A stretch of DNA of 58,673 nucleotides from Salpingoeca rosetta (lineage: Eukaryota > Protista > Choanoflagellata), in the NCBI GenBank assembly GCA_033442325.1, contig JAWQFM010000021.1:606347-665019 (forward strand), given 5' to 3'. Below, piece after piece: positions 383 through 12,240 of the stretch. Position numbers and translations under genes: made by a program. Each line of letters starts with the position of its first letter. Position 1 is the stretch's first letter. The notes beneath the pieces are model-generated. The model was given only the letters and a program-made list of their open reading frames with translations, ran no database searches and was not told the origin of the DNA.

Positions 383-3300
383 ATGGTGGGGTGCCGAGGC
401 TCCACCGTGGCTGGCGCTGCCCTCGTCGCGGTGTTTGTGTGCTGGTGCATGCTGGCGTGTGCACCTGTGACAACAACGCACGCCGCACGAACCAAGTCGA
501 CAACACCAGCAGCACCAACAACACAGGCAATACCACCACCAACAACGAAGGCAGCAACATCAACAAAGACAAGATCACCGTCGCCGTCGTCGTCGCCGTC
601 GTCGCCGCTTGCTGCGTCCACGGCTGTGTCTGTGGTGTCGCCTGGGGCAGGTAACGGCGTGATCGAGTACGCGATATCGTGTCCTGCAACAGAGGACCAC
701 CACCTGTTCCTGCCGGCCCGCAGCGACGACGTGGGCGTGTGTGGAAGTGTGAACCGTGGGAAAGGTGGTGATGGTGGCGGCGGCGGTCAAACGGGCGACC
801 TGACCTCCAGCGCGAGCGTGCGTGACCTCGCAGCACTGTCAGCGCCAGGACGACACCGACGCGGGAAGGGCAGCAGCACGCGCTCGCTCTCAGGCGTTGC
901 AAGGCAAACCAAGGCGGCGACAGCAGAGCAGATGCTGGCCGACCATGCGCACCAGCTGATGATAGGGCAGCAGCTCATCAACAACCACCCGAGCGCGCTC
1001 GCCGCGACGGCGTCAGAAGAAGACCTCAGGGCAGCGCAGGCGGCCCGCACGCTGTGCGCAGACGAGCACGTGTTTGCTCTGCTCAGCAACGGCAGCTTTT
1101 GCAAACTGGACCTTGCCCGACCCTCTGGTGTGGAGTGGTGTAACCAATACGACCCCATCGTCGTCACAGAGTCCTTCGAGGTGGGAAATGTGTGTGTGTG
1201 TGTGTGTGCGTGTGTGTGCGTGTGTGTGTGTGTGTGTGTGTGTGTGTGTGTGTGTGTGTGTGTGTGTGTGTGTGTGTGTGTGTGTGTGTGTGTGTGTGGC
1301 TGTGTGTGGCTGTGTGTTTGTGATTGTGTATGTGCGTGGGCGCGCTCATGCACCTTCGCCCCTCCTCCCCCCCAACTCTGTCGATCATGTGCAGAACCAG
1401 CCAAACGTCGCCATTGGCTTTGAGGATGGCTCCGTGTATTTGGAAGAGAACGGCGCCTTTGCGTGAGCCGTTGTGTGACTTTGTGCGCGTGTGCCTGCGC
1501 GCATGTGTTTCTGGGCATGTGCTTGTGTGCTGACAGCCCACTGACTCCACCTTCCATCCTCTGACCCTTCTCCTCTTCTCATTTCAACTCGTGCACCTCT
1601 TGCCCGCCCACTCACTGGTTGGTCCTGCTCTTCTGCCACCACCACCATCACCACCACCACCATCACCACCACCACCACCATCACCACCACCACAAACACC
1701 ACCACCGCCGCCGGCACCACCATTGCCGGAACAGGTCGCTGGGGGTGAAGGTGAGCGACTTTCCGCAAGACTTTGAGGTGGAGGACGTCCGCTTCGCCAA
1801 GAGCACAACATCGTGCATGGAACGCGTTGGTCTCCACTCTGGTCGCGTCTACAAGGCCTGCCGCGGGTGGGTTATGCTTGTGCCGTGTTGTGTTGCGGTG
1901 TGTATGTGTGAATATGCACATGTTTGTGTTTGTTTGATGTGCATACGTGTTTTGTTGTGTTGTGTTGTGTTGTGTGTGTGTGTGTGTGCGTGTGTGCATG
2001 TGTGTGCGTGTGTGCGTGTGCGTGTACGTGTGTGCTCATATCTGTGTGCGTGAAGAACGTTCCACTGTCCGCCCGTGGAACCCCACCTTTGCTTCTCTTT
2101 CACTGTCTTTTCTCTTCCCGCGTGTCAATGATCGTGCGTACATGCGCATGTGTCTGTCAGGCAACCGGCCAGTGGCGACGATGAAGACGAAGTGTTCATG
2201 CTTCCCTTCACCCGCCACGCCGTTGAGGGCCAGTCCAAATCAACAGGGTGCGCCGCATGTATGTGTGTGTGTGTGTGTGTGAATTGGGATGATGATGTCC
2301 AATGTTGTGCTGCGCACATTTGCGCGTTGCTTTGTACTCCTTTTCGCGGCTTCCATCTTAACACCAACACTACCTGCGCATGCTTTGGACTCAAACTTAA
2401 CCAACCACCAATAGCCACGTGCTACTGAACCTGACGTGGACGCAGTTTGTGGTGATGGACCGCGTTCTGCAGCACGAAGACTTACAGGAGGAGGACTGGT
2501 ACCACAATCGCGTCTTCTTCGCAACAAACATCACCCACCTCGCATTCGGGGACCCAAACGGTACGTGCGTTTGTGTATTGTGTGTGTGTGTGTGTGTGTG
2601 TGTGTGTGTGTGTGTGTGTGTGTGTGTGTGTGTGTGCTTGTGTGTGCTTGTGTGTGTGTGTGTGTGTGTGTGTGTGTGTGTGTGTGTGCTTGTGTGTGTG
2701 TGCTTGTGTGTGTGTGGGTGTGTGTGGGTGTGTGTGGGTGTGTGTGTGTGGGTGTGTGTGGGTGTGTGTGTGTGGATGTGTGCTTTGCGTTGTGCTACGT
2801 GCTTGTGTCTCCACCCACGTCGCACCACCTCATCCTTTCTTCTGTGTTGGCGCATCAGGTGTGCGTGTGTGGGAAGACACATTTGATGCCCCTGTCGTCT
2901 CCATCATCCAACTTCGCGATGGCTCTCTGTACCAGGTGATGATGATGATGATGGTGGCGGTGGCGGTGGCGGTGGTGGTGGTGGTGGTGGTGGGAGTGTG
3001 GGGTGGAGCGTGGTGATGCAACAGCGTTGACGGTTGTGGCAGTGGTGGCGTGATGCTGGTGGCAAACTGTTTGTCACACTCGAAATACTCATTGGTGCTG
3101 AATGTTGTTTTGTTTTATCCTCGCGCTTCGTTCCATCTCACCTCCGCTGCTTCGCCCCACTGCGCACTGATCAGCTCCCGCACAGCCACTTCATGTTCGA
3201 CAACAGCAACACGGCACCGGGCGACAAGCCGCTCATCAGACTTGTCGAGGCAGCGGTGTGTGCATGAAGTTGTGAAGTCGTTTGCTTCCTGCAATTGCAA

Positions 3301-12240: not shown

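Follow-up and report, generated by a model that had tools for sequence, protein, structure and literature searches.

The question raised by this locus is whether an IRE1-type receptor can carry two kinase domains, instead of one, ahead of its RNase (KEN) domain. The stretch of DNA that we analysed, referred to below as the window, comprises 58,673 nucleotides of the choanoflagellate Salpingoeca rosetta (assembly GCA_033442325.1, contig JAWQFM010000021.1, positions 606,347 to 665,019 of the forward strand) and represents eukaryotic DNA with a G+C content of about 55%. At window positions 383-12240 of the plus strand, on which all features discussed below are located, it holds the IRE gene of this organism. 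As a preliminary description of the region had proposed, one phase-consistent spliced frame joins a signal peptide, a luminal part, a transmembrane helix, a first kinase (K1), a short linker exon, a second kinase (K2) and a KEN domain. The explanation that best accounts for our data as a whole, and that we favor with moderate confidence, is that this gene is the sole IRE1 of S. rosetta, and that its product has a kinase-kinase-KEN layout in which K1 would tune the activity of the K2-KEN module.

The predicted spliced product is 100% identical to the 1309-residue protein deposited as 'IRE protein kinase [Salpingoeca rosetta]' (XP_004991683.1 / EGD75762.1 / UniRef100_F2UGL2), and XP_004991683.1 maps onto window 383-12240 exon by exon with zero mismatch. 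The 31 exons of the gene are separated by 30 introns of 167-463 nucleotides, all of which possess GT-AG borders. The frame put forward in the preliminary description is exactly this public gene model, and the locus itself is consequently not new. What appears to be undescribed is the combination of two intact IRE1-type kinases in tandem within one IRE1. In line with the earlier statement that no characterised IRE1 of this layout was known, we found no description of a two-kinase IRE1 in the searchable literature. The suggestion of an undescribed variant is therefore upheld for the architecture, but not for the gene, which is already public in GenBank and UniProt as an IRE protein kinase.

Pfam recognizes Pkinase in two stretches of the 1309-residue protein, followed by one Ribonuc_2-5A (KEN) domain. 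When the two halves were scanned apart, Pkinase was detected with E 1e-34 in residues 640-925 and with E 2.6e-34 in residues 925-1180; Ribonuc_2-5A (PF06479) was assigned to residues 1194-1302 with E 1.6e-13 (51.3 bits against a cut-off of 23.3; E 1.6e-15 for the domain alone). The predicted signal peptide (window 383..469, residues 1-29) is marked by a hydropathy peak of 2.43 at residues 6-32 and precedes a low-complexity stretch rich in Ala, Ser, Thr and Gly that extends from residue 30 to about residue 220, as judged from the composition of residues 30-225. Apart from one buried kinase helix, the only internal hydropathy peak (1.94) is the transmembrane helix at residues 586-611 (window 4592..4905, interrupted by the intron 4638-4873), to which a short linker of about 45 basic and acidic residues is attached on the juxtamembrane side. 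This pattern predicts a type I topology with a luminal N-terminal part and with residues 612-1309 in the cytosol. In the position between the transmembrane helix and KEN, where IRE1 has a single kinase, the S. rosetta protein thus presents two Pkinase stretches. In keeping with the single kinase stated beforehand for canonical IRE1 and RNase L, each of the five other KEN proteins that we scanned with Pfam (three IRE1-like and two ankyrin-KEN proteins) contains one kinase stretch. The second kinase is a variant feature, and membership in the family by descent is unaffected by it. An RNase L-like layout does not apply to this protein, as Pfam detected no Ank families in it and both a signal peptide and a transmembrane helix are present.

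K1 (window 5451..8108, residues 653-900, eight exons) and K2 (window 8574..10931, residues 927-1172, seven exons) both find their best solved relatives among IRE1 structures. For K1, human IRE1 (E 1.6e-27) is followed by yeast Ire1, and the next family, MST4, is reached at an E-value of 1e-18; for K2, the alignment with human IRE1 in the PDB runs in one stretch through the kinase and KEN with E 8e-40. The IRE1-style G-loops reported for both domains, to be compared with LGHGAEGTIVY as seen for human IRE1 in the PDB alignments, and the motif LIAVRxGxHVPVIAD common to K1 and K2 are present as they had been quoted. K1 further contains VAVK (K686), the alpha-C Glu, HRD (771-773; D773), KPSN (N778), DLG (794-796; D794) and APE at 819, and the corresponding elements of K2 are VAVK (K960), the alpha-C Glu, HCD (1047-1049; D1049), KPSN (N1054), DFG (1070-1072; D1070) and APE at 1095. 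The catalytic residues of both domains all fall into invariant columns of the kinase alignments. With these core residues kept, both kinases look competent for catalysis, and neither K1 nor K2 has the look of a pseudokinase. Nine other IRE1/RNase L-type kinases share 43 invariant columns, of which K1 retains 31 and K2 34, and the losses private to K1 concern the Phe of DFG and three residues of the C-terminal RP...HPFFW motif. This motif has degenerated to RL...HKFCR in K1, whereas K2 possesses it in intact form and continues from it straight into KEN. Since RP...HPFFW contacts KEN, it would be redundant in the new position of K1, where no KEN domain follows. The replacement of HRD by HCD is also found in a 663-residue ENA protein (P0043), another KEN-linked kinase, which belongs to the ankyrin-KEN clade, so that the non-RD state has arisen more than once in the KEN-kinase family.

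The KEN domain (window 10932..12240, residues 1173-1309) is continuous with K2 inside the single exon 10865-11106. It keeps Y1248, R1257, R1260, N1261 and H1265, which are family-invariant columns in an alignment of six KEN proteins, and also contains RFPALL and, in the C-terminal translation, VEHIKE. With the catalytic Tyr, Arg, Asn and His residues intact, the RNase looks active.

How did this gene acquire its second kinase? Over 245 residues, K1 and K2 show 47% identity, compared with about 30% for either of them against animal IRE1. Maximum-likelihood analysis places the two as sisters (100/99) within the IRE1 clade (86/84) and apart from the ankyrin-KEN clade (95/94); their common stem is long (1.33), and the terminal branches are of similar length (0.68 and 0.80). 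Their intron phases run in parallel (1,2,0,2,1,0,2 in K1 and 1,2,0,-,1,0,2 in K2), and the first and last exons of the two blocks start at matching codon positions (..LSL..RLGxGAxNT and G|ATGAC.. = RMT.., respectively). Taken together, the degree of identity, the sister branches and the parallel intron phases mark K1 and K2 as the products of an old event in which the block of kinase exons was duplicated in tandem within the gene. Its age is reflected in the divergence of 53% of the residues and in the gain or loss of one intron, and at 47% protein identity, saturation of the synonymous sites between K1 and K2 is to be expected. The intron in question is present in K1 only (window 6731..6996), where it splits HR|D, and the matching site of K2 lies inside the single exon 9737-9980; reflecting one gain or loss since the duplication, it may provide a dating character once orthologues are at hand.

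The copy of the last exon present in K1 is cut right after ...CLKHKF, where the GT of a (TG)n tract serves as the donor. The upstream copy has lost the motif of the kinase-KEN junction and was joined to K2 through a new exon of 26 residues (exon 21, window 8296-8374, 79 nucleotides). In a shuffle test, this linker exon was not significantly similar to the juxtamembrane exon (p 0.25), and the DNA-level match between the spacers is probably due to the (TG)n repeats that fill the introns. No remains of luminal, transmembrane or KEN exons are found between K1 and K2, where 465 nucleotides leave no room for them. The duplication was hence partial and intragenic, and it provided neither separate 5' exons for K2-KEN nor a separate 3' end for K1. 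An assembly artefact was considered as the source of the two kinases and rejected, since copies that are 47% identical cannot arise from a collapsed or doubled assembly.

The luminal part of the protein shows a weak resemblance to that of IRE1. The preliminary description had expected a profile search to return two Pkinase domains, Ribonuc_2-5A and an IRE1 luminal domain; the kinases and the RNase were recovered, but the luminal part matched neither Pfam nor any PDB sequence. For its core (window 1046..3255, residues ~222-463, from the end of exon 1 to exon 7), we obtained a weak collinear match when five canonical IRE1 luminal domains were combined into a profile and compared by hhalign with residues 230-445 (E 0.0069, 207 collinear columns), and in this alignment IRE1 luminal motifs including FEDGSVY are in register. 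A language-model feature search of a protein atlas led from the luminal core to eukaryotic clusters of PQQ_2, the family that marks IRE1 luminal domains (0.85, 179 shared features), which we treat as a lead only. An AlphaFold2 model of the core, calculated from an alignment of six rows, was too poor to use (pLDDT 42). Homology of the luminal core to the IRE1 luminal domain is weakly indicated by these data, and we regard it as likely.

The gene appears to be the only member of the IRE1 family in S. rosetta. When the 55.4-Mb genome was searched with the gene's own KEN domain and with a KEN profile, the IRE locus alone was recovered and no second KEN was found; turtle IRE1 matched other loci through its kinase part, and none through its luminal or KEN parts. 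The most identical match of turtle IRE1 among those listed (45%) is the large exon of K2, apart from a few shorter ones elsewhere (46-48%). A separate canonical IRE1, the search for which had been recommended, was accordingly not found in the genome with these three queries, although searches of this kind are insensitive. In the manually curated kinome of S. rosetta, 'Other/IRE' has one entry, PTSG_12653 (PMC4054682, Additional file 5), which is probably the gene studied here, as its GenBank name 'IRE protein kinase' fits the entry in the kinome table.

Relatives outside this genome are scarce. A phmmer search with the 80-residue KEN exon (window 10866-11105) against 1.8 billion representative proteins yielded two matches, the 1309-residue protein itself (100%) and a 154-residue Tara fragment (44% identical), and two scans of metagenomes returned nothing or generic kinases at 31-51% identity. 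A Tara Oceans contig of 1509 bp (TARA_SAMEA2622624 scaffold_69444) contains the last kinase/KEN exon at 44-45% identity with matching exon borders; its introns are rich in (TG)n, and its upstream exons resemble GWLAPE...FLY and ...DL..R. It probably derives from a related marine choanoflagellate and is too short to show whether one or two kinases were present. Its GWMAPE...ITSAMDVYSAGRVIDFLYT exon is slightly nearer to K1 and its last exon nearer to K2, both being too short to interpret.

Our argument for a two-kinase product depends on a single transcription unit, which is the simplest reading of the K1-K2 spacer. Its 465 nucleotides correspond to two ordinary-sized introns, 8109-8295 (187 nucleotides, phase 0) and 8375-8573 (199 nucleotides, phase 1), both typical for this gene, and the exon between them, which is in frame and has a strong donor. 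The phase-0 end of exon 20 at 8108 is followed by a GTGTGT donor; the linker exon is preceded by a CAG acceptor, ends in phase 1 and is followed by a GTACGT donor; and a further CAG acceptor precedes the start of K2 at 8574. The two junctions singled out in the preliminary description, 8108/8296 and 8374/8574, are both of the GT-AG type and keep the frame. Apart from this ordinary spacer, one transcription unit is suggested by the absence of a separate 5' end of K2-KEN and a separate 3' end of K1, by the persistence of open frames, usable splice sites and complete motifs in both blocks over ~0.7-0.8 substitutions per site, and by the pipeline behind the public model, which made use of expressed sequence tags (ESTs) and RNA-seq. 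The S. rosetta annotation was generated with EVM/PASA from ESTs and from RNA-seq of eight conditions (PMC4054682). From the gene model, we predict that the two-kinase mRNA is real and substantial, and we hold this to be quite likely.

Set against known systems, the protein most closely resembles IRE1/ERN1 (yeast Ire1p and human IRE1alpha; PDB 3P23, 4YZ9, 3FBV, 2RIO). It shares with these receptors the signal peptide, the luminal part, the one transmembrane helix and an IRE1-type kinase, here K2, joined directly to KEN through HPFFW, as well as the Tyr, Arg, Asn and His residues of KEN; both of its kinases have solved IRE1 proteins as their best relatives and belong to the IRE1 clade. It departs from them in possessing two tandem kinases instead of one, in having HCD instead of HRD in K2 and DLG instead of DFG in K1, in its short juxtamembrane linker, and in a luminal part that is too diverged for any profile threshold and carries an added low-complexity N-terminal extension. 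With RNase L, which has one pseudokinase, and the ankyrin-kinase-KEN proteins it has in common the order of a kinase or pseudokinase followed by KEN; in proteins of this type, dimerisation of the kinase-like domain activates the RNase. Unlike these proteins, the S. rosetta protein lacks ankyrin repeats, is predicted to be anchored in the membrane and has kinases that group with IRE1. Two kinase folds per chain are also known from JAKs and GCN2 (pseudokinase plus kinase), from RSK/MSK (two active kinases) and from the plant tandem kinase proteins, in which one domain regulates the other in cis. For an action of K1 on K2 these proteins offer an analogy only, as they belong to unrelated families, whereas the S. 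rosetta pair is a duplicated IRE1 kinase of which both copies look competent and whose output would be an RNase.

These comparisons lend themselves to a model for the division of labor between the two kinases. In yeast and human IRE1 and in RNase L, back-to-back pairing of nucleotide-bound kinases unites the KEN domains and thereby switches the RNase on. K2-KEN would represent this canonical module, binding nucleotide and forming the back-to-back dimer or oligomer that activates the RNase, because only K2 is positioned to bring KEN domains together. Non-RD kinases are generally independent of activation-loop phosphorylation, and for K2, with its HCD motif, phosphorylation of its activation loop is probably less important. 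K1, tethered ~45 residues from the membrane and ~30 residues from K2, would be an extra active IRE1-type kinase of the RD class (HRD, DLG) that lies nearer to the membrane and is clustered first when the luminal parts oligomerise. Acting in trans or in cis, it might then phosphorylate K1 domains, K2 or the linkers and so tune the assembly of the K2-KEN RNase. K1 would thus provide regulated phosphotransfer, with K2 serving mainly as a nucleotide-dependent scaffold for the RNase, and under endoplasmic reticulum stress the RNase would cleave an XBP1/HAC1-like mRNA and/or carry out decay of the regulated IRE1-dependent (RIDD) type.

Several points weigh against this picture. The roles of K1 and K2 are inferred. 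Unlike IRE1, both kinases lack ~20 residues around helix alpha-G, including the nearly invariant HPF (residues ~845-870 and ~1120-1145), at sites that correspond to exons 7369-7484/7744-7805 in K1 and 10245-10357/10627-10688 in K2, and this loss could alter kinase activity. Being common to both copies, the deletion would predate the duplication; it is either a real deletion ancestral to that event or the trace of a small exon that was missed in both halves of the model. As to the status of a sole IRE1, searches of the genome with PF06479 and with a canonical KEN query gave no match at all, missing even the KEN domain of this gene, so that the blanks of such exon-by-exon searches mean little. 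A close orthologue was not found in the protein collection either, with the whole cytosolic part or with K2-KEN as the query. The public model is a pipeline prediction, and a query with the junction piece (residues 860-1010) retrieved no transcript-derived fragment across the K1-K2 junction from the protein collection. Finally, exon 12 (ending at 5029) finishes in phase 1, as does exon 21, and exon 22 starts at 8574 in this phase. A splice from exon 12 to exon 22 would remain in frame and could yield a canonical one-kinase IRE1, and the two-kinase form may therefore not be the sole or the main isoform. It is unlikely, though well worth keeping in mind, that the two-kinase protein is not made or only a minor product, the annotated fusion being a minor isoform or a prediction artefact. 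Either the K1 block would be skipped in this way, leaving an ordinary one-kinase IRE1, or the locus would encode a receptor kinase consisting of the luminal part, the transmembrane helix and K1, ending by read-through past exon 20, together with a soluble K2-KEN protein initiated at a linker Met. The frame that remains unspliced at 8108 indeed meets a stop near 8308-8310, where a K1-only product would end, and the linker exon contains two in-frame Met codons. However, the skipping of nine exons at once is unusual, and 465 nucleotides would have to accommodate a terminator and a promoter together in a spacer that otherwise looks like two typical introns separated by an exon, the GTACGT donor of which is strong. 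Moreover, the long retention of both blocks with intact splice sites and catalytic motifs argues that both are translated, and RNA-seq was used by the pipeline from which the public model came. It would be harder still to view K1 as a decaying relic of the duplication, made up of pseudo-exons or dead spacer and devoid of a catalytic role, and we rate this as extremely improbable. Its DLG in place of DFG and the three family-invariant residues lost from RP...HPFFW could be read as decay, but DLG is found in active kinases and the lost motif is the part that contacts a KEN domain no longer attached to K1. All eight K1 exons are open and have GT-AG borders; K686, the alpha-C Glu, D773, N778, D794 and APE are kept; K1 retains nearly as many invariant positions as K2 (31 of 43 against 34 of 43), and its branch is no longer than that of K2.

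Other alternatives accept the two-kinase protein and differ in what it does. The preliminary description had entertained a repurposed defence or surface receptor, in which case the gene would be real and its IRE1-derived kinase-RNase output retained, but the protein would have ceased to be a sensor of the unfolded-protein response, and its diverged ectodomain with a mucin-like N-terminus would perceive a signal different from unfolded protein. The lack of any Pfam or PDB sequence match of the luminal part, the ~190 residues of low-complexity, Ala/Ser/Thr/Gly-rich sequence ahead of the luminal core, the long K1+K2 stem in the tree (1.33) and the HCD motif of K2, a non-RD feature of the kind common in innate-immune receptors, would all fit such a change of function. 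Nevertheless, this is the only IRE/KEN gene that we found in the genome, which makes the proposal less likely, as loss of the unfolded-protein response function would leave the organism without an IRE1; in addition, the luminal core is still collinear with IRE1 luminal domains and shares motifs with them, and the catalytic residues of the RNase are intact. We consider a repurposed receptor very unlikely for these reasons. A variant of the mechanism that strikes us as improbable, albeit conceivable, is that K1 and K2 form an intramolecular pair, either face-to-face for phosphorylation in cis or back-to-back as a pseudo-dimer, by which the two-molecule step of activation would be partly hard-wired. 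If this were true, the concentration dependence and the threshold of RNase activation would be changed, and phosphotransfer (K1, RD) would be split from the RNase scaffold (K2, non-RD), making the protein a natural separation-of-function IRE1. On balance, a sole S. rosetta IRE1 in which K1 tunes K2-KEN between molecules or within them still provides the best overall account of the locus.

The elements of the gene were located by three-frame translation of window 1-13500 and by mapping the protein back onto it. The translation contains everything that the preliminary description had listed, at the positions given there, and includes beta-rich segments with DGS-type motifs. Exons 1-7 lie at 383-1180, 1395-1462, 1735-1866, 2161-2247, 2415-2560, 2859-2935 and 3175-3255, and exons 8-12 at 3546-3671, 3853-3907, 4099-4125, 4434-4637 and 4874-5029. 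K1 is encoded by exons 13-20 (5451-5519, 5815-5920, 6286-6358, 6621-6730, 6997-7127, 7369-7484, 7744-7805 and 8033-8108), and K2, after the linker exon, by exons 22-28 (8574-8642, 8900-9008, 9201-9273, 9737-9980, 10245-10357, 10627-10688 and 10865-11106), the last of which runs into KEN. Intron 28 (11107-11461) is followed by exons 29-31 (11462-11556, 11822-11907 and 12183-12240), and the coding region closes with the stop codon at 12238-12240. Long (TG)n/(CA)n or (TGTC)n tracts are found in nearly every intron, and several donors, for example those at 8109, 10358, 10689 and 11557, are the first GT of a (TG)n-type tract. An in-frame ATG at 164 would prepend ~73 His/Thr-rich, (CA)n-derived residues (window 164-382), while the annotated start at 383 yields a proper signal peptide. 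Downstream of the gene, an open frame of 596 residues (13818-15608) gave sub-threshold Pfam matches (RR_TM4-6, CDC45) and is probably low-complexity. Two runs of N at 19281-19956 (676 bases) and 56390-56607 (218 bases) represent scaffold gaps, both of them outside the IRE gene.

How the kinase of IRE1 controls its RNase is debated, with phosphotransfer set against nucleotide-dependent conformation and face-to-face against back-to-back dimers. Two diverged and seemingly intact IRE1 kinases in one chain, of which K2 alone touches KEN, would constitute a naturally split version of these debated roles. S. rosetta is closely related to animals, and both its transfection and its genome editing have been reported. 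Even if the two-kinase mRNA should turn out to be minor, the locus would still represent a clean case of an intragenic exon-block duplication that has long been kept open. If, on the other hand, this gene is indeed the sole IRE1 of S. rosetta, the whole IRE1 branch of the unfolded-protein response of this species would go through the two-kinase form.

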